Shown here in pieces: positions 2,234-45,999 of a stretch of DNA of 64,000 nucleotides. The notes below the pieces were generated by a model. The model did no database searches. It saw only the letters and a program-made list of their open reading frames with translations, and was not told where the DNA came from. The DNA comes from Podarcis vaucheri. Lineage: Eukaryota. A program made the position numbers and the translations under genes. Location of the stretch: assembly GCA_965113315.1 (NCBI GenBank), contig OZ220364.1; one strand, 5' to 3'. Position 1 is the first letter of the stretch; each line of letters begins with the position of its first letter.

Positions 2234-3284
2234 AACAGTATCCAGGAATTTAGGGACTCTGTAGTAAGAATGAGATGGACCAATATTTTGGACTTCCTGA
2301 ACAGCAAAAGCCTGATTTATACTGTTTTTATTAACCACAAAGATAGCTATTGCCAAAGAAAGAGAACTCAACATTGTGTATTAAAAATAAGTTGTGCAAA
2401 TTAATATTTTGTGCAGATACACTTATCTTGTAGAAATATGTCTATGTTTGATTCTAAATATATTTATATTATTTTGTGGAATTTAGAATATATCCTGGAA
2501 GGGAATCACAGGTAAATGAGTGACATAGGGTAACATGAAGTGCAAGATTCATAGGTACTTGTGCATGTCTTCGATGATCACTGGTTCTTTCAAAAGCACA
2601 TTTGTAAATATTAACTGAAGGACTGAAACCTACTGTTATATATTTAAAACGTGGATTTATCAGCAATCCAAATACTACACCATATTTGAGTATGTGGAAT
2701 CTCAGGACATGCATAGTTCTGACTCTTAAGTTATTTTTATTTAGGTAAATGTATACCTTGTCCTTCTATTGTGATCGTGGTACTTGGAAGAGGAGTTTGT
2801 TAAGTCAAGATAGGGAAAATTTAAGGACATTTCCTTAAAATTGTCTTGAGTAGCTGTGATTGAATTCTAAACATCCTTCAAAACTTTAGCTTGATCATCA
2901 CATTTAACATACATGCATGCATGTCATCTAATAAAGTTCAAGTTCATAAATTGATGGTTGTAGCCAAAGCCCATGATAGTATTAATGCAATAATACAGAA
3001 CATATATTCATAATACAAAAAGACTGCCAAGTTCCTGAAACACACAGTTTCCCTTGTATCTCTCTCAGAACTCCAATTCTAATATTTTGCCTTTTAAAAA
3101 TCCAATTTACCAGCATCCATAATGTAAGAAAGACAAGTTCCCAGATACACCAACAAACTCAAATCCAGCTTGATTTCAGATTAAACGTCTGAAGCACCAC
3201 CACAATTTATAGCAATTTTATCTTAACTCCTTTTTCCTGATTTTTTTTTTCCAGCCAGTGTATAGAGGGCCATTCTGCATGTTA

Positions 3285-3635
3285 AAGGTAAAGGTACCCC
3301 TGCCCGTACGGGCCAGTCGTGTCCGACTCTGGGGTTGCGCGCCCATCTCGCTTAAGAGGCTGGGGGCCAGCGCTGTCTGAAGACACTTCCGGGTCACGTG
3401 GCCAGTGTGACAAGCTGCATCTGGCGAGCCAGCGCAGCACACGGAAATGCCGTATACCTTCCCGCTAGTAAGCGGTCCCTATTTATCTACTTGCACCCGG
3501 GGGTGCTTTCGAACTGCTAGGTTGGCAGGCGCTGGGACCGAGCAATGGGAGCGCACCCCACCACGGGGATTTGAACCGCCGACCTGACGATCAGCAAGTC
3601 CTAGGCGCTGAGGTTTTACCCACAGCGCCACCCGC
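3285..3635 (-). mobile_element. Sauria SINE
   Basis: (aaaggt)n, the reverse of the (ACCTTT)n tail. Body motifs cacgtggccag and tatttatctacttgcac. Reversed tRNA B box (gggatttgaacc). 8-bp TSD gcatgtta at 3277-3284 and 3636-3643. Confidence 0.9.
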
Positions 3636-5478
3636 GCATGTTATGGAGCTATTATTGCCACTCAAAAGAAACAACAGTGTGTGCCTGCTTGCTTGTGTGA
3701 ACAAAGGTTTCAGAAAGCCATCTCTTGGCCCTCTCTATAAGGGGCAGGCTAACAGATAATAAGTGATGTCTCCCACCTGACCATAAATACAAAGTCTGTA
3801 TACAACACCTTGTTGTAGTCGCCTTCCAAGATTTGGAAACGCAGCTCAATAAAGACATTTAGGGAAACTTGTGAAAGTTGAGATACTAGCTCTAAAATGC
3901 TCTTTTTTTCAAGAGTGGGTAGCAAGGGAGAAATTTTGTGTTTCTAATTAGTTGTAGGTCCCTTCTGGGTTCTGTCCAGAAGATCTAATCCCTTAGTTGT
4001 CATCTAGTCAAAAAGCTATTTCCTAGCCTTTGCAACAAATGATTTATTGGCAGTTATAAAATATTACAAAGGCTATTTTCTCAAGTAACAGCATGCATTA
4101 TATGAGCTCCATTAGATAAAAAAACCTGAAGGCTTCTGAACACTGGCTTGTTGTAGAAATATGCTCTGTGGACCATTATTCTCTGCACAGAATAATCCAG
4201 TTAGCAACTGAAATAGTAATTATTAATTGTTAAATAGGAACTTTAGCACACTATCCACATGATATCCAAGCTGTAAGGTTTAAGAAGTGGGAAGGAATCC
4301 TTGGATCTGCCTCTGCCTGCAGCTCTCCTGGTATATGTGCAGCAGTTGGAGGTGGGCTCCCTTGCAGCTTTCCAGTCCAATCTGTCCCCTTTTGTTGCTT
4401 TCAACAGATCTGAGGAGCAGACGCAACATTAGACCTGTGCCTCTATTGCTGATGGAACTTCTTTGCAGATTTGTTGTTTGATCCACAAAGAAACTGTGCT
4501 GATAAATTTTACTCCCAGCTCTCATATTTGGCAGGATTAAAAAGGAAAACAAAGCACGACTTCAATTAAACGGAGCACAGCTTTAATTAAACAATTAATC
4601 CAGTATAATGTATGTGAAGCTTTTATGTGAAGTGCACTTAATAGAAGCACTGTTTCTTTTTATTAAATGGGACATCCAGGTGCCTGTGGCTTGGCTGCTA
4701 GGCTCTGTGTAAAATGTCTATTATGGAATTTCTGGAAGATAGATGGGTCACGTAAACTTCCTGCCTACTCTGATGAACTCAGAAGGGGAACAATTCTTTT
4801 ATTTATGTAGCCTTTTTTTAAAAAAAACCTGACAACTTAATTATTGTGATTCTCTTTCATTGGCGGCTTTAAAGTTGAAACTAGATAACAACTACTACAT
4901 CCTACCTTTCCTCCAATAAGTTCAAGGTGGAGTACCTGGTTCTTTCCCTTCTCAGTTTGCCCTCACAACAACCTTGTGAGGCAGGATTAAGTTGAGAGGC
5001 AGTGCCAAGCCCAGTTTGTGACTGAGTAGGGATTGTGCAACATTACATGGAGGTCCTTTCCAGCTCTGCAACTGTCTGTTTAAAACAGAGGTGCCTTAGG
5101 TGTGGACATCCATATCTTGTTGGACCCCAATTCCTGTCAGCTTCACCTATCTGAAGTAATCATTCAGTGCAAATGATAAATGGATTTTAATAGGCTAGCC
5201 AACAGATCTGGAGAAATGCAAATAGGCCTTCTGTTTGTAGCCACCTGCCAAACGTGAGACGGCTCTCAGATGTTGATTGGAGTGCAATAGGGGTTACTTA
5301 CAGACAGTCCTTGAGGTATTCTGGTCCAAAACGCTTGTCAGTTTTTTGGTCAAAGAAAATGTGGCTATATAGGTATCAAAGTTGTGGCTGACTCACTGTT
5401 GGTATGGTAAGTAAATATAAATGAAATGTACGGAGAACCCATGGATTGGTAAACTGAACTCTTTCAGTTTAAAAAACA

Positions 5479-19363: not shown

Positions 19364-20062
19364 AAGACTTGTCCATGTATAATCTGGAAGCTTTTCTTCC
19401 ACTGCAAATGGCAGGTGTGGAACTCCCAATCCAGATAAGGATTGCAGCAGCAGTAAGAGGTTAAAGCTCCCTGTTCTCCTGCCAATTCATACTGAATCCC
19501 TGTGCCTACTAAGTTCCTTTTTTAAAAAGGCCATTAATTCAATTGCTAACTGTGTGAAAAGCATCTTGTACGGCCCTAATTTTAATGGCACATCTATCTG
19601 TACCAGCATCTAAATGTTCTCTTTGGGCTTCAAAATGTGTGTAATTAAGAAGGCATTAATTGTCCTTTAGTTGGTAGTTTATATTACGCTACAATAGTTC
19701 TGCCAAATGGGGGGGGCAGGGGTTGACCCCAAAGTAGTTAATGATATAAGAAGAGCCCTGCTGGATCCAATCAAAAGCTGATATGATTTAGCATCTTGTT
19801 TCCCACCATGGCCAACCAGGTACCAGATATTGGGAGGAGGTAGGATATGTGCACTCCAGCAACTGGTATACAGAGGTGTGCCACCTCTGATCCTGGAGGT
19901 AGGATACAGCACCTTTCTCCCCTTCGCACAGTTGTATGTGGCAAAAACTGATGAGAACTTTGATGTAGCAGTATTATGGTAAAGGTATTATGGGTACAGA
20001 ATTACTTGTACAGACCACTTGCTGTCATCCCAAACTGTCCATTCACTTAGCCTTTCCAGTTA

Positions 20063-20232
20063 CTGTATTTTCCGTCTATAAGACGCCCCCATGTATAAGA
20101 CGCCCCCTATTTTGGGGGACCCAGAATTAAGAAAATGGGGGGAGATGTAGCCGTGTACAGTATAAGATGCCCCCTAATTTTTGACATTATTTTTTAGGGG
20201 GGAAACCTAGTCTTATACATGGAAAAATACAG
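20063..20232. mobile_element. Tc1/mariner-superfamily MITE
   Basis: TIRs ctgtattttcc...ggaaaaatacag, TA on both sides, internal tataagacgccccc repeats. Confidence 0.85.
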
Positions 20233-21616
20233 TAGGTCTTCTTCATCTGGTTGGATTCTTGCTCAGCAGCTTGCATATCTGCTTGTAGTGTTGAAGGGTA
20301 ACCCTGTTAAGTCAGAGGCACGGAAATTGCTGAGGAGGGCAGAGCACCTCAAGGACTCTTCCACCTGTCCTCTTGGTGTGCCATTCCATGTCTTACACAA
20401 CCATTGCTTTCTGCCGCTGTGGCTGGTTGCATTTATTCCAGCATGCTCATTAAAAAATATTTTAAGCTTTTGTGCTGAACCCGTCAGAGATTTGCCTCCT
20501 GGGATGACAAAAAAATAATAATCACCTGATCTAATGAAGCCTCACCTGCACAATGTTTAACCCTTTCTGTGTCTTCAAAGGTGAGAACCTGTTTGTTTTT
20601 TAATGCCACAAATTAAGATTCCTAACTTCTTGAGAGCTTGGAAACCTGGCAACTTCTCTGCAGTTAGTAGGTCTACCCTGCTCTAAGTACTTGGTTTCTA
20701 CTACTGCCTACAAGTCAGTCTAGGAAGGAAATTGTTTGCTCTACTTCTGCTACATATCACATTGATGTATTTGATCTGGATTGATTCAGCTGAATTGTAG
20801 TACTGTGAAGAAGAGATCATTATTTCCTTTGTTTTTCTGCTAGAGATGCGTTAACATGCACCCAACGGATTTGCAGTATGAGCAGTAGTTGTTGTGAACT
20901 TTTGTCTTTTCTGTAAGTCGGGTCTAGAATAATGGTTTGGATTTCCAGAAATGGCATGCTTAATACTCAGTTTGAAGCATTTTCCAGCCATGTGAGAAGT
21001 TGTTCTTCCTGGGTGCATCATTCGTCTACCTAGTTCAGTAAGCTGTCTTTGGCAGTAGTCAAATCTGACTGCTCTCAGAGGAAGTGACTGTGTTCTTGCT
21101 TTGTGATCTGAATGATGATAAAGTGTTGGCCTGCAGAGAGGCTTTCTGAACTTTACGAAATGCAGAGCAGCAAAGGGATCCTCTTTGCATTCTTAGTTAA
21201 TAGTTCCGAGTTTCAGTCCTTAAGCTGGTGCATCTCACCAGTTTCAGCAGAGAGAATGGACAATGGAGGAGTGCAGTTTCCTCATGTGCATGTTTTGCTG
21301 AACATTAGTGCAGAAGATGCAAAGTTGGTAGCCTGTTCCTTTAAGGACTTTGTACAAAGCTGGCACCATGCCCAGCCTCTTCTCTTCTTCTTCCCACTTC
21401 AAGGCAGTTCCTTTGGGGCTTTTCCTGAAACAATACCGCAAGCTACCCTGCCACTCTGCTTGCTCTGCTTGCCCTGCAGACAGTCTCTGAATCAAGAGCC
21501 AGCTCTGCTTTGAGGGACAATGGAGAGTTGCAGCACAGGCAGAATGAACTATGCAGCCTGAGTCTGGATCTGTGCTGAAGGCGTAGAGAACAAGGCTGTC
21601 GTCTGGAAACAGCGAT

Positions 21617-21766
21617 ATGGAAGCTGAACCCCGTAGTCCTCAGAGTATGTGGGAAGGCGACTCCGAATTCAGCTTCCAATTTTGGACCCAGCTTTTTCTG
21701 TGGATGCACTTGGTTGGCCGGTTGGTCACTTACGTCCTGCGTAGCTTTGGGGGGCTAAAGCAATAA
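21617..21766 (+). CDS. 49-aa small membrane-protein-like ORF nested in PRKACA intron 1 (SMIM46-like)
   Basis: MEAEPRSPQSMWEGDSEFSFQFWTQLFLWMHLVGRLVTYVLRSFGGLKQ*. Strong Kozak (gatATGG), 9 CpGs in ~185 bp, hydrophobic core, polypyrimidine tract and AG at 21376-21407. Resemblance to human SMIM46 is recalled, not searched. Confidence 0.6.
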   Translation: MEAEPRSPQSMWEGDSEFSFQFWTQLFLWMHLVGRLVTYVLRSFGGLKQ

Positions 21767-23061
21767 CTCCTTCCTGTCCCTTATGACTTGGTTGTTCTTT
21801 GGAGGTCCACTGTGACATCTAATATTTTTAGAGCTCTTTGGCAAGCAGTCCTATGAGGAAGAGACGTCGCCCTGTATTTTTTCTTCTTTCCTTACCTCCA
21901 TTCTTCTCTGTTCTGGATGGCCTTGCCTAAGAAAGGCTTCTTAACCTTGAGAGAAGGACAAAGCTTTAGAAGCAAGATTTCTGGTTTCTCTTCCCATGTT
22001 TATCCACACACTCTGGACTGTGCAGTAATCTTTTGCTTCATTCAGAGAATATGAGCTTTTGGGGGCTGCTTAGCAATAGAATCCAGAAGTCATGAGGACT
22101 TCCATTCTGCAAATGAATGTTCACCCTTGGAATGTTGTATTAGTGTTTAGAAAGAGTGATTTCTATCTCCAGAACATGGAGCATCCAAGGGGATATGGAC
22201 TTGAATGAGCTCCTACTTTGAGTTTTGGGGGGCCACACCTTGTCTTATTCCATCTACAGCATCAGAGGTTTGCTTTGGTGTGCTCTAGTTTCATCAAGTT
22301 ATCTGAACATCTTGGTCCCTTCCAACTCTACAATTCTATGATTCTATCTCAGTCTCCCTCTCTCCTTGAATTGTTTCTTCTTTCTGTTAAAGAATCACCT
22401 CGTTTTGGAAGATAATAGGGCTTCCCTACCTGACAATTTCCTTATTTGCCCTAACTTCAGCCCTGAGGGCAAAAGAGATTCGGAGAATTTGTGAGCTATT
22501 TTAAGCCTCATTGCATAGTCCTTGCTACTGCTGATCTGGCAGGCCTTGCTCCCTCTGTATTAATCAAATCTGCCTGCTGTTCACCCTCTGATCAGCTGTG
22601 TAAGTGACCAGGCTCCCTGTATTTCTTTCTAAACAGAGAGAATATGGAATGAACTGTCTTGGAGCCTTTCTGAGCCTTAGCGTGGGGGCTTGGGAAAACC
22701 TAATATGGATGGCTGCCCCAGACTTGTTGCTGAACTGACATGAATGCTATGGTCCAGGGAGGTGGGTTTGATGGAAGTCGAGAGCAGTCGGCTCAAGCCA
22801 AAATGCCTGTGTGAATCACTTGGAGGGGAATGTTAAGAACTCTGCTGAATCTGGGACTGTGTCTGTTCTCCGGTTGCTGCCTTTACCCCTCTCTTCCTGT
22901 GGCGGGACAGGAAAAGCAGTGCCGCTGCCTCTACCTGTTGGCAAATAGCAATGACTGAAGAGAGTGCCCTCCTGGATCCTGACTGAGCTGCTTGGCTGTG
23001 TTTGCTCCGAGAGCAGAGCTGGGGCAGAGGAAAAGAACCGGTGATAAAATAAAAGAGAAAC

Positions 23062-23251
23062 ATGAGCCATGGAGCTGAGGTGAACTCTCAAAACTCCAGC
23101 AAGGACAAAGGGTGTAAGATGTCGGCGCTACAGAAACTGGAGAGTCTGGCAGGGCGGATCTTTTACTGGGGGCCACGGAGTGATGCTGGGGCACCGAACG
23201 TTGGGGAGGCAGCCTATGAATCTGAGCACACGGCAGCCTGGAATGAGCAGA
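23062..23251 (+). CDS. PRKACA: PRKACA alternative first exon encoding a long Cbeta2-like N-terminus (CalphaL)
   Basis: 63 codons plus 1 nt: MSHGAEVNSQNSSKDKGCKMSALQKLESLAGRIFYWGPRSDAGAPNVGEAAYESEHTAAWNEQ. Donor A|GTGAGT in phase 1 makes A+TG = Met with exon 2. Motifs match Cbeta2 ALQKLEGFASRLF and SEHTALWDRSMKEF. Confidence 0.9.
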
Positions 23252-23676
23252 GTGAGTTGACAAGGGAGCACGGTTTCCAGGGGTGCCAGAATCGGTGGGT
23301 TCCCCCGAGACTCTGCTCCAGAGCTGCTGCTGTTCTGTGCCTCTTGGTGCATGCGTATGCTTGTGGTTGAGTGTATAACTGGAATCTGAAATAGGGCTCT
23401 GATATTTTTCAGAGAAGCCCGCAAAAGGCTATAGCCTTAGCTCCGACAGCCATTCTGGCTATGACTGTTGACTACCTCTTTCCTCATGCTAAGCTAAAGT
23501 GTAGGGTGCTCAACTTTAATGAGGCCACAGCTGCTTGGTGTGTGGCTTTGATTTTGGCCTTAGAGAAGCCCCATCGGTTCTCAAAAGCCCACTTCAACTC
23601 ACTCTTTCTTACTATTTGTTATCAAGCTGTTGGAGCCGGATGCTGCCCTAACTCTGCAAGTGTCTATTGCACGGAG

Positions 23677-23812
23677 TAGAGGTGGGGAGCCTGTAACTCT
23701 CCCAAAGTTGTTGGGCTTCTGCTTCTATCAACCCTGGCCCAAATAGCCAATAGGAAGGGATGATGTGAGTTGTAGTCTAGTAACATTGGCGGGGCACAGT
23801 TCCCCATCCCTG
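23677..23812. mobile_element. ~130-bp palindromic non-autonomous DNA element (hAT-like MITE)
   Basis: ggtggggagcctgt...acagttccccatccctg inverted ends. Relatives at ~5570, 15340, 35170, 35403, 37408, 44595, 51288 and 56110. Confidence 0.6.
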
Positions 23813-24559
23813 ACTTAGAGAAAGGATAGCTGGAGCGTTCCTGGATGTTCTCCCACATTTTGTGGGGAGAATTGCAACTTTTTGGGAAGTTGTGGGGAAA
23901 GGTAATTATTAAGAAGCAAATTCTCTTTGCCCGTGTGTGTTTCAAAACTTTCTTCCCATTTTGACAGATTTTCCCCGGCCTCTCCAACTGATGTTGTCAC
24001 TTTAGCTGTTTTGGTTAAAATGTGTGGTCAGAGTTGTTGACATAGGGAATTTCAGTCTGAGGTTGACAGAGTGATGTGAGTGAAAGTCATGGGCTGATGA
24101 TTGTTCCTTTTTCCTCTTTGCTGCCACTACCAGTCAGGATTGTAGCTTTTGTTGTTGACTTGGTGTGATGTCATATTCTATTTCTGTCACTGGCTGTATC
24201 TTAATTCATGGTGTTGTCTACCTGTAGAGTGATGGGTTGTAAATAGATGGTAGGTCTTCTATTGTTCTGTCTGGACCACACATTACTTCTTCATCTAAGG
24301 CAAAAGGGAGTGAATGCAGTCTTTTCTTGGATCCTCAAGTATGTTTAAACAAAACTGTCACAATGTTTTGGCAATGCTGCTTGGTCTAAAATAGAACCTT
24401 GTTGAACATCTGATGCCAGATTCTTCTGTGGCCCCTTTAATCTTTTGGCATTGACACCTCCTCCATGCTGCATCTGAGTGTGTTGCACAGGAAGGAAAGT
24501 GTTCAAAACCACCAGCAGCACATTTTGGATCTATTTAGCTTATACAATACACATGTAGA

Positions 24560-25130
24560 TTCTGTTCAACATCTACATGAAACTGCTGACAGAGGTCATT
24601 TGTAGATTTTGGCTGTGGAGTCATCAGTATGCAGATGACAGCCACCTCTCTCTCATTTTCATTTGTTCCTGTAAGATAGTTGAAAGGCTGAATTGCTGTC
24701 TGATATCTGTGATGGACTGGATAGGGTGCAATGAGGGCAAACATAATTCAGACAGAAGAGGTACTGTTGGTAGTTGGACCGTGTGATATGAGATTGGTTT
24801 TGCAGCCTGTTCGGGGTGGAAAGTGTGAAAGTGCAGATGCTTAGTTTTCTGCAGGTGGTGAGGGGTGCCTTTTCCCAGTATCACCAGGTGCAACAGCTAT
24901 CATCCTCCCTGACACAGGGGAATCTTGCCACAGTCATTCCTCCTCCTCTAGTGACCTTCAGATGACAGTGCTGTAACTGTTTATGTGGGGCTGCCTTTCA
25001 AAAGCGTTTGGAAACCTCAATTAGTTGCAGCCAGAATGCAAGGCACTTTGAATCTGTAATTAATGTATATGAATGCTGATTCTACATGATTTGCACTAGC
25101 TGCTGATTAATTATCATGTTCAGTTGCCTT
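24560..25130 (+). mobile_element. Old L2-type LINE reverse transcriptase fragment
   Basis: LFNIYMKLLTEVI...HQYADDSHL (RT YADD motif), degenerate downstream. Confidence 0.75.
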
Positions 25131-41545: not shown

Positions 41546-42494
41546 CCTCTGTCTGGAGAACAGAGCAGCCATCAAGAATGCAGAATTGTTCCCTCCCTTT
41601 GCCTAGACCTCAAGACAGGGTTGATGGTTTAGAGTGCAGTTGGAGGCTCTTGGGCATGACGCAGGAGCGACTGATGGCCTGAGGTTAGATGAGATCATAG
41701 TGCTCAGCCTGGCCTTAAGGCCTGTGGTGCTCTGTCGCTGTCGGGGGTCCCTCATGGCTTATGGAAGAGGTCAGTGTTCTGGAGATGGGGAGGGGTGATT
41801 GCTGCCCCTTTTTGGAGGGGGGCCCATGGAGCTAAAATATAATGCTGAGATGGCCCTAGGAAGGGGGGAAGAGCTGCCAGAATTTTCTTACGTGGCAAAA
41901 GAAATCTCCTTGAGGAGTGGGGAGGGGGCTGGGATCTGTGCAGGAAGGTGTAAGCTGGTGGCGCTCTGTAAGTAATGTGGATAAAGCAGGAGACAAAGGG
42001 AAAGTAGGTCAGACAGGCTGAGCTGGAGCTCCACGTCTGTTTGTGTGCGTGTCTCGGGGAAATCCAGCCGCTCTGTGCTGCAGCATGAAGGAATTGGGTG
42101 GGAGGATTGCTGGGAAGGTTTGGAGTGAGAGGATGCTATGAAAGCATCCCCAGACTGCGCCTGGCCATGTTCCCTTTGTGTCAGGTACCTCTCCTGTAGG
42201 AAATCAGAGGCTGGTGCAAAGCAACCTTATTTCAGGGGCTCCTCCATTTTACGGTCTTCTGATCTCATGCCAGGAGAAGCTGCATCTCCACGATGGGAGG
42301 GGGGAACTCAAAATGAGCTTTTTCTGGTGGATGCAGGGGCAGACTTAACTCCACATTCTCAACTGGGAGCCAGGATCCCTGGAATCTGTAGTCAGGCTCC
42401 ATTTCTGTAGATGGTAGTGAACCGTTCAGCAAATTTACCCTGGTTGAGGAGTGCTTGCTCGGCCTTTTCTGCTTCTCTTTGCTTTATGTAGATA

Positions 42495-42744
42495 CAGTCG
42501 TACCTTGGATCCCAAATGCCTTGCAACTCAAATGCTTTGGCTCCCGAACGCCGCAAACCCGGAAGTGAGTGTTCTGGTTTGCGAATGTTCTTTGGAAGCC
42601 AAACATCTGACGTGGGTTCCGCAGGTTCTGATTGCATGCCGGAAGCTCCTGCAGCCAATTGGAAGCCGCGCCTTGGTTGCTGAATGTTTTGGAAGTTGAA
42701 CGGACTTCTGGAACGGATTCCATTCGGCTTCCAAGGTACAACTG
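42495..42744. mobile_element. Tigger/pogo-like MITE
   Basis: TIRs cagtcgtaccttgg...ccaaggtacaactg with TA duplication on both sides. Confidence 0.88.
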
Positions 42745-42810
42745 TATATGCTGTGCTTGGCCCCAGTGGATGATGGGATCTTGAGGGCTTAGTTTGTAAG
42801 GTTGTTGTTT

Positions 42811-43460: not shown

Positions 43461-45937
43461 CCAGGAGTGAGGCAACCTTTTAGAAAGTGGGGGTGTGAAA
43501 ATTGTTTGGGGTTCCTTCCCAGCTCAGCAAGGGGTACCAGTCTAAGAATGCACCCAGCCCCTTCCTAGTTAATCAAGCGGTACTGCTTTGCCAGTGAACA
43601 CAACCTTTTGGTGTTGGCAGAACGCTGTTTTACATAGATGGAGATGCTGGAAGAGGGAGTTTAGTATGCCAATTCTGCTTTCTAAAGCCCAGCCCTGAGC
43701 TACTTCTGGAAATATCCTCTGCCAGAGTCCCCAAAACTCTGGTTTATATCATGACAAAAAACTAAACTAAACTTGGACGATGTTCAGCTTGCATAATACA
43801 CAGAATTAGCATATAATTATTTGATCACTTTTAATCAGCCAAATTTATTTAATTAACTGATTAGATTATGACTCCAATTGTCTTCAGAACCCGCACAAGT
43901 GGTAACAGCATGGGATATTATTTCTCTTGTGCAGCTGGAGTAGAGAGAAAAGGATGGGGTTCATGGGATACAGGTGAATGATTAGGATGTGTTAAGGGTA
44001 ATTTTCTCTCTCATTTACCTGTTTACCTCTAGATCCTTTAGAAGACACTGAATCCACCTTCCTAAGCTTTATCTTTCTTTTGTGGCCATGACTGCTAGAA
44101 ACTGTCCAATTTGAGGCAGTCACACCCAGTTGGGTGTTCTCATCTGCAGCTATATTTGACATGTTTCTGTCGGCAGTAGATGGGTTTTAAAGCCCAAAAC
44201 CTGTTTGGACATGGAGCATTTCCTTGGTTCTGTGAATTTTCTGCTCTCAAGAACCCACTTTGTTGTCGTGCTTGGTGCCATTATATACCTGTAGCTTAAA
44301 AAACCCTGATTATGCAATTTAGAGAGTGTACAACGATCTACGTGGTAGCCTTCCTGCTTTGGATATATGGAGTGTGTTGGAGCACCAGGTAGTTTCTCTT
44401 AGACACAAGACTACCTTCCAGGTTGGATCTGATCTTTTGTACATTATAGAACACAAGGTATGCAGTGGCCATGCCATGGCTGCTGGTGTCTGCATACAGG
44501 TCATCAGTTGGTTTGCAGTCAGGATGATATTGGGAGCCCTTAGTTCAGTGCTGGTGGATGTGTGGCTCTCTAAATGTGTATTCCAGCTTCAGCTAGTGGT
44601 CGGGGAAGGTGGGAATTGCAGTCCAGCAGCATCTGGAGGGCCACAGGTCCCCTCTTTTCCATGTTTCAGTCACTGTCTCAGCACATGGCAGGTGCTTTTA
44701 CCATGAGTAGCTCACCTGTGACTGGGAAACCAGAGTCTCTGAGTCTTGAATGATTCCACTTTACCTCTCATGATTGATGTTATTGGCTGAAGGGCCCGTG
44801 CTTCCCCAGATTCTTCTCAGAATTTCATTCCACAGCTCCTAAATTGCTCTTTTAAACTCCTGAAAATAAGTCTGGGGGTTGTGGCATGAGACCCTTTTTG
44901 AAGGGGAGAAGCTGCCAGTACATGGAACTGCCAGTCTTGAAAGTCTCTAGTTGTGTGTGTGTATTTTTGAAACTTGCAGAGCACCTTCTGAGTTGGAAAC
45001 TGAGGAGAAAATGTGTGCATGCAAACAGATGGCCCTATGGTATTTTAGATGCTTACCGTCAGGGCAGGATTCACCTAATGAACCCCATCAGTAGAAGCTC
45101 TGCACAAGGGCTTCTGCATGTGCAACAGGGCTTCCCCCTCTCCCACGTGCACCCTGAAATTGTCTCGAAAGGGTTGGGGAACCCCCAGAACCGCATAGAG
45201 GGAGGGAGATGGTTCCATCTGGCAAGTGGAAACCCTTACATAGGCAGAGCGTCATGGTGCGGCATTGAATTTCACATCTGTATGACTCCTCAAAAGCCTT
45301 GCAAATGAGTGGCATGGATGTGGAGAGAGTGGGGCCTGCCTTCCTTTTTCATGGGTTTACTTATTCCTTGCTCTTGCTTTAAAAGGCTGGAGGTCCCAAT
45401 GTGGCCCAAAGTTGTCTGTGACTTGCAAGGATTGGGCACAGGTTGGCCCCCAAAAGAAGCAACATGGTGACAGACCTAAAGCTGAGCAGCCATGATCTTT
45501 AGCAGAGGTGACCGGTTGCTACTGTATTCTCCAGGCTGGATTTAGGGCTCCAGTGGTAACACAGATTTCTCAGATATTGATTGGGCATATTTCCACAGGC
45601 CAGCAGTTGGCCATTTCTCATCTAGAGTCTCATGGCTGAGCCTAAAAGAGGGGGCTGTGTGTCTGCTCTCTGCCCTCCAGGGAATGTTTGCTCCTTGGGA
45701 ATCCGACTTGTTGAAAGGTGTTGTCTTCCCCTTTCTGGCCTTCCTGCTGGGACTGCATCCTCCGTTCCTGGTGATTCAGCAAATAGGCCCGTCAAAGAAA
45801 TGAGAGCTGGCAGACTTGAAGGGGACTCCTGTTTCCCAACATAGCCTCTTTGACTCCTAAGGAGTGTTCAGTGGCTCAGGCCTTCAGGCAACATGCTCTC
45901 TTGTCAATGCTCTTTCTCTGCTTCTGCTTACTTACAG

Positions 45938-45999
45938 TGAAGGAGTTTCTTGCCAAAGCCAAAGAAGAGTTCCTCAAGAAATGGGAGAACCCGTTGCAG
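45938..45999 (+). CDS. PRKACA: PRKACA exon 2
   Basis: ttacag|TG AAG GAG...: (V/M)KEFLAKAKEEFLKKWENPLQ|gtagga, 62 nt. Confidence 0.97.

Follow-up and report, generated by a model that had tools for sequence, protein, structure and literature searches.

We found a 49-codon open reading frame (ORF) in the PRKACA locus of the window, the whole stretch of 64,000 nucleotides of Podarcis vaucheri DNA analysed here, and the amino-acid differences between this ORF and its two detectable relatives suggest that the peptide itself is under constraint. We tentatively read it as a lineage-restricted, translated helical microprotein of 48-49 residues, an explanation to which we give a probability just below even. 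Lizards, or a somewhat wider group of reptiles, would then encode such a peptide, and its transcript, restricted to certain tissues, would originate within PRKACA intron 1 a short way upstream of an alternative first exon of the kinase gene. The translation, location and partner of the peptide are points that we infer only, and the ORF is presented as a plausible small-ORF candidate of a familiar kind, not yet as a demonstrated gene. The features on which the argument draws are collected in Table 1.

Table 1. Positions of the ORF and of neighbouring features in the window.
Feature	Position	Strand	Basis or remarks
49-aa ATG ORF with stop	21617..21766	+	Sequence and translation, homologues P0001 and P0002, substitution statistics, hydropathy, predicted helix
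Invariant codons 12-29, WEGDSEFSFQFWTQLFLW	21650..21703	+	Identical in window ORF, P0001 and P0002
Covered block containing the ORF	21301..22034		X1 records 4-5, X2 records 21-23; low-depth contigs of probably-RNA assemblies
Second covered block, into alternative PRKACA first exon	22329..23205		X1 records 6-8, X2 record 24; gaps inside
Pyrimidine tract with two AGs (proposed acceptor)	21376..21407	+	Sequence; contigs collinear through the tract
Alternative first coding exon, PKA C-alpha	23062..23251	+	ATG at 23062, 63 codons plus 1 nt, donor GTGAGT at 23252
PKA C-alpha exon 2, VKEFLAKAKEEFLKKWENPLQ	45937-45998	+	Motif at about 45.94 kb

Translation of the ORF yields 49 amino acids followed by a stop, exactly as a preliminary description of this DNA had written it, and the strong Kozak context claimed there is present as well (AGCGATATGG, with G at -3 and +4). 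An intact frame and a usable start context, by which a microprotein is recognized, are thus both found. A stop in the same frame, nine codons 5' of the ATG, makes the ORF self-contained, so that it cannot continue an upstream coding exon; this stop, together with the terminal one, led us to reject an N-terminal exon of the kinase. As had also been described, the ORF lies on the same (plus) strand as the PKA catalytic exons and about 1.3 kb upstream of the alternative exon, with 1,296 nt between its stop and the ATG at 23062.

The claimed count of 9 CpGs in the 186 nt from 21581 to 21766 was confirmed. Nine or more occur in 0.8% of intervals of that size between 4 and 47 kb, the average in the intron being 1.9 per 186 nt. 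Such CpG retention is equally in keeping with a hypomethylated regulatory region and with coding sequence. The length of the ORF is not above chance, since the whole window holds 159 ATG ORFs of at least 49 aa, or about 2.5 per kb. Both observations would be accommodated by a chance ORF over a conserved non-coding element of an alternative PRKACA promoter or leader, an explanation that we take seriously and rate somewhat short of even. On this view the region from 21.3 to 23.25 kb would belong to the exon that begins at 23062, as its promoter-proximal region, its long leader, or a transcript upstream of it or antisense to it. The invariant 54 nt would act as a regulatory element in DNA or RNA, and luck would account for a frame still open in one other species.

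Other readings of the segment were set aside. A repeat or paralogue within the window was rejected on the basis of tblastn and blastn, which return the ORF alone and thus no second copy, and of a read depth of 2-6. A structured RNA was rejected because no Rfam family matched in 19-25 kb and folding of the ORF region showed no excess over shuffled sequences (z = -0.27). Runs of N are absent from the window. Two organisms close to it, A and C, differ from it at 21424, 21463, 21775 and 21778 and by downstream indels, with no difference inside the ORF; an arithmetic estimate puts the number expected there by chance at about 1.2, and variation within the clade is uninformative. Organism A, nearly identical to the window, shows gaps of 2 and 8 letters in contigs that extend into the 270 nt beyond the ORF stop, the 2-letter length difference lying within 21500-21870, along with its substitutions at 21775 and 21778, and the 8-letter one in 21857-22007.

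The locus itself is identified by PKA catalytic motifs on the plus strand: GTGSFGRV and then LVKHKE, which is of the C-alpha type, at 47.9 kb, YRDLKPEN at 51.6 kb, DFGFAK and DWWALG at 52.2-52.4 kb and RFGNLK at 55.5 kb. The preliminary description had placed the ORF in PRKACA intron 1. The canonical MGN first exon, which would mark the upstream border directly, was not found in the window; the first letters of the window already belong to a CpG island of 74% G+C, and from this island and exon 2 the ORF can reasonably be placed in that intron. The exon at 23062-23251 has the phase expected for a PKA first exon, which is also that of the canonical one. A second CpG island, at 3150-3750 (up to 25 CpGs per 300 nt, observed/expected 0.87), shows no obvious PKA first exon in any plus frame and could be an alternative promoter or belong to something on the other strand. 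A CpG peak at 42450-42750 (15 CpGs per 300 nt, observed/expected 0.80) lies about 3.3 kb upstream of exon 2.

An exhaustive phmmer search of 1.84 billion representatives, which stand for about 15 billion proteins, gave one match at an E value of 0.001 or below. This match, P0001, is a peptide of 48 aa with 75% identity to the ORF (E 2.9e-19), aligned over residues 1-48 on both sides; its start is conserved and its stop comes one codon earlier than in the window ORF. A near-twin, P0002, is the only other sequence in the 90% cluster of P0001, and the identities of the two to the ORF are 73-75%. Both are nameless ORFs found only in Logan assemblies, on contigs of 1,121 and 2,943 nt. A single 50% cluster is related to the ORF, and it too is Logan-only, which does not bear out the description of the ORF as amniote-conserved. 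The exact window peptide is absent from the 15-billion-protein collection. A word-indexed protein search found no match with the single peptide as query and returned P0001 alone with a three-sequence profile, while 302 pattern matches of this profile in JGI metagenome contigs yielded none that was confirmed, and the ESM Atlas gave no usable match to the peptide. Pfam gave a single sub-threshold match, a weak resemblance of residues 17-45 to DUF3007 (E 0.024, 15.3 bits) that falls short of the curated cut-off of 25 bits; we rejected membership and take the match as chance similarity between hydrophobic helices.

The ORF had earlier been called SMIM46-like, for a proposed likeness in size and motif to the human protein. 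We consider it very unlikely that the ORF is the reptile orthologue of human SMIM46 and that amniotes at large share such a gene in this intron. An annotated amniote-wide gene should yield bird, turtle and other lizard orthologues in the library, yet no annotated or named protein of any organism was matched at E 0.001, although the roughly 15 billion proteins represented include NCBI and UniRef entries, and the profile word search likewise recovered nothing beyond P0001. No significant similarity to annotated SMIM46 or its orthologues was found among phmmer matches of at least about 32 bits, a comparison that used no SMIM46 reference sequence. Relatives at or above this score, a limit extrapolated from one reported score, are listed by phmmer, so that a very diverged one below it would escape; this, and the motif and location earlier proposed to be common to both, is what speaks for orthology. 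The hydrophobic segment of the peptide also misses the hydropathy thresholds for transmembrane segments, as detailed below. A search of about 8.4 million full texts found neither the name SMIM46 nor the peptide motif strings; nothing turned up on PRKACA with a microprotein and intron 1 either, and the matches for PRKACA with smORFs were irrelevant. The case illustrates that a suggested gene name such as SMIM46 is unfit as evidence. The lack of an annotated homologue among so many proteins also agrees with a chance ORF.

The distribution and kind of the amino-acid differences argue in the other direction. The three-sequence alignment contains 12 replacements, six in residues 2-11 and six in residues 30-45, on either side of the invariant core. 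When 12 differences were dealt at random, an invariant run of at least 18 residues arose in 1.4% of trials (p = 0.014). The replacements are E/D, A/S, E/K, R/S, S/N, M/T, M/I, V/F, T/S, V/I, S/N and G/R, and those among hydrophobic residues in the helix region exchange one hydrophobic residue for another (M/I, V/F, V/I). Their mean BLOSUM62 score is +0.5, compared with about -0.7 in simulated neutral change, for which we evolved this ORF and kept the cases with the frame still open. At 10-15% divergence, 0.7-2.8% of the simulated neutral ORFs reached +0.5, and the replacements are thus more conservative than neutral mutation would make them (p = 0.007-0.03), which speaks against a chance ORF.

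The integrity of the frame can be read both ways. Every replacement, and also the earlier stop, is reachable by one base change, which sets the divergence of the two DNAs across the ORF at about 9% or more. At this divergence no indel separates the ORF from P0001 over 147 nt, whereas the near-identical organism A already has its two gaps downstream, and the start codon is kept and the stop position is kept within one codon; all of this weighs against chance. In the simulation, however, substitutions alone left the neutral frame open in 29-42% of cases at 10-15% divergence, as a chance ORF would allow, and an intact frame in the relatives is partly built in, the protein library containing called ORFs only. 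The conservation pattern suggests protein-level constraint as seen at the amino-acid level in one independent species pair, but a conserved regulatory element would also show an invariant 54-nt core between diverged flanks.

Sequencing runs point to a probably transcribed segment. Fourteen small assemblies (62-153 million letters, from five studies with three species labels) carry 0.16-0.71 of the sampled words of 21300-21900, and large assemblies of DNA size carry 0.93-1.00 of them. We guessed the small assemblies, whose library type is not on record, to be RNA and mapped contigs of X1, X2 and X14 together with the raw-read RNA-seq run X23 to 20000-24999. Unique cover in X1 and X2, which come from separate studies, has a depth of 2-6 and is restricted to the two blocks of Table 1, leaving about 2.2 kb of unique intron uncovered (20334-21168, 23340-23673, 23841-24508 and 24676-24999). 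Within the second block, probably-RNA contigs cover 22741-23205 and end before the intron, near the donor of the 23062-23251 exon. The end of cover near this donor and the recurrence of the same blocks in two studies indicate RNA or open chromatin and argue against random genomic reads. The block containing the ORF is thus probably transcribed, on a strand that the contigs do not reveal. In the RNA-seq run X23, of which 12% was sampled, neither the ORF nor the alternative exon received a read; should the ORF block be expressed, this blank would make it tissue-restricted, with the two blocks going together. Their joint cover in X1 and X2 and joint blank in X23 would also fit a chance frame in the surroundings of the alternative exon. 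Repeats at 20068-20234 and 22313-22347 reach word depths of hundreds to thousands in every run, and contigs break at both; the latter is a 35-nt CR1-like 3' end (...cttccaactctacaattctatgattctat...).

How such a transcript would begin and be processed is only partly visible. The polypyrimidine tract pointed out earlier upstream of the ORF does exist: pyrimidines fill 21376-21399, and an AG comes after them at 21402-21403 and again at 21406-21407. Its proposed use as a splice acceptor at 21404/21408 is not supported by contigs at 21301-21452 (X1) and 21338-21511 (X2), which run collinearly through the site with no joint reported, and no splice joint was reported anywhere in the unique part of 20000-24999. 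Five ATGs precede the ORF start within the covered block, one of them, at 21520, in the context ACAATGG, and they make efficient translation of the ORF less likely unless the transcript starts at 21552-21616. A further 24 ATGs lie between the ORF stop and the ATG at 23062, and no canonical poly(A) signal occurs between the ORF and 23048. With so many ATGs on both sides, the block resembles a non-coding transcript, which favours the chance explanation.

The same arrangement bears on the idea of a peptide-dependent upstream ORF, one that sits in the long leader of an alternative PRKACA isoform and would throttle translation of the kinase. We consider such a role for the ORF very unlikely. Its position on the same strand, 1.3 kb upstream of the kinase ATG, the occurrence of the two covered blocks in the same runs and a conserved peptide core, typical of stalling upstream ORFs, would all be in keeping with it. 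However, positions 22035-22328 are uncovered and no contig joins the blocks, and with 24 intervening ATGs a transcript that contained both would hardly translate the kinase, whatever the ORF does.

The peptide that a translated ORF would produce has three parts: an acidic N-terminus, an invariant aromatic core from W12 to W29 and a basic amphipathic C-terminal helix. Residues 1-17 carry a net charge of -4 and the last eight residues one of +2 to +3, and the helical hydrophobic moment is 0.57-0.69 over residues 30-47. AlphaFold2, given a three-row alignment, models residues 8-47 as one helix, with a mean pLDDT of 77.6 and block means that reach 93-94 at residues 21-40. Peptides of this kind come out as a single helix by default, hence this model is a weak indication to which we give little weight.

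The preliminary description had proposed a membrane microprotein with an acidic N-terminus, a hydrophobic core and a basic tail. The charged ends stand, whereas the core is no more hydrophobic than 30% of the chance ORFs of 40-70 aa in the window. The hydropathy scales do not indicate a stretch with the hydrophobicity needed to cross the bilayer, a general trait of small integral membrane proteins: the best Kyte-Doolittle 19-mer has a mean of 1.20 (1.14-1.24 in the homologues) against the usual transmembrane threshold of about 1.6, and a plain sum of Hessa scale values gives a dG of +4.1 to +5.9 kcal/mol. Q21, Q25, H31 and R35 fall inside the candidate segment, and the last two, together with the low Kyte-Doolittle mean and a Hessa sum of about +5.9 kcal/mol, leave the membrane-spanning proposal unsupported. 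The peptide may instead be an aromatic amphipathic helix that rests against a partner protein or the surface of a membrane.

Under our preferred explanation of a lineage-restricted microprotein, the product would form one long helix, in which a poorly ordered acidic N-terminus leads into the aromatic core WEGDSEFSFQFWTQLFLW and then into the basic amphipathic C-terminal helix. Its aromatic and amphipathic face would dock on a membrane interface or a partner protein and would not serve as a classical bilayer-spanning anchor. A bolder version of this explanation, which we hold to be rather unlikely, is that of a young squamate- or sauropsid-restricted gene, born inside PRKACA intron 1 and switched on with the alternative PKA C-alpha first exon. 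Such a gene would encode an aromatic helical peptide without annotated relative, possibly acting on a specific PKA isoform. Provided that the peptide is made, reptile genomes would gain an unannotated, family-less microprotein inside a well-studied signalling gene, and with the alternative promoter next door its co-regulation with a PKA isoform could be tested. Otherwise the invariant 54-nt core would still mark a conserved element of the alternative promoter or leader.

Intron-nested or leader-borne small-ORF microproteins of vertebrates are a class found by PhyloCSF and ribosome profiling, and often named as SMIM genes. The ORF differs from this class in its conservation in one other organism and in a hydrophobic segment that stays under the transmembrane thresholds, and neither phmmer nor the profile word search revealed a sequence relation to named SMIM proteins. 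With the class it shares a size of about 50 codons, a single coding exon nested in a host gene of the same strand, one predicted helix, a lack of Pfam family and a length below standard cut-offs. A second comparison is offered by the alternative first exons of the PKA catalytic genes, such as the sperm-type C-alpha exon in mammalian intron 1 and the long C-beta2 first exon. The ORF is unlike these exons in its terminal stop and in the in-frame stop nine codons upstream, but it shares its part of intron 1 with an alternative first exon, the one at 23062-23251, and both are covered in the same runs.
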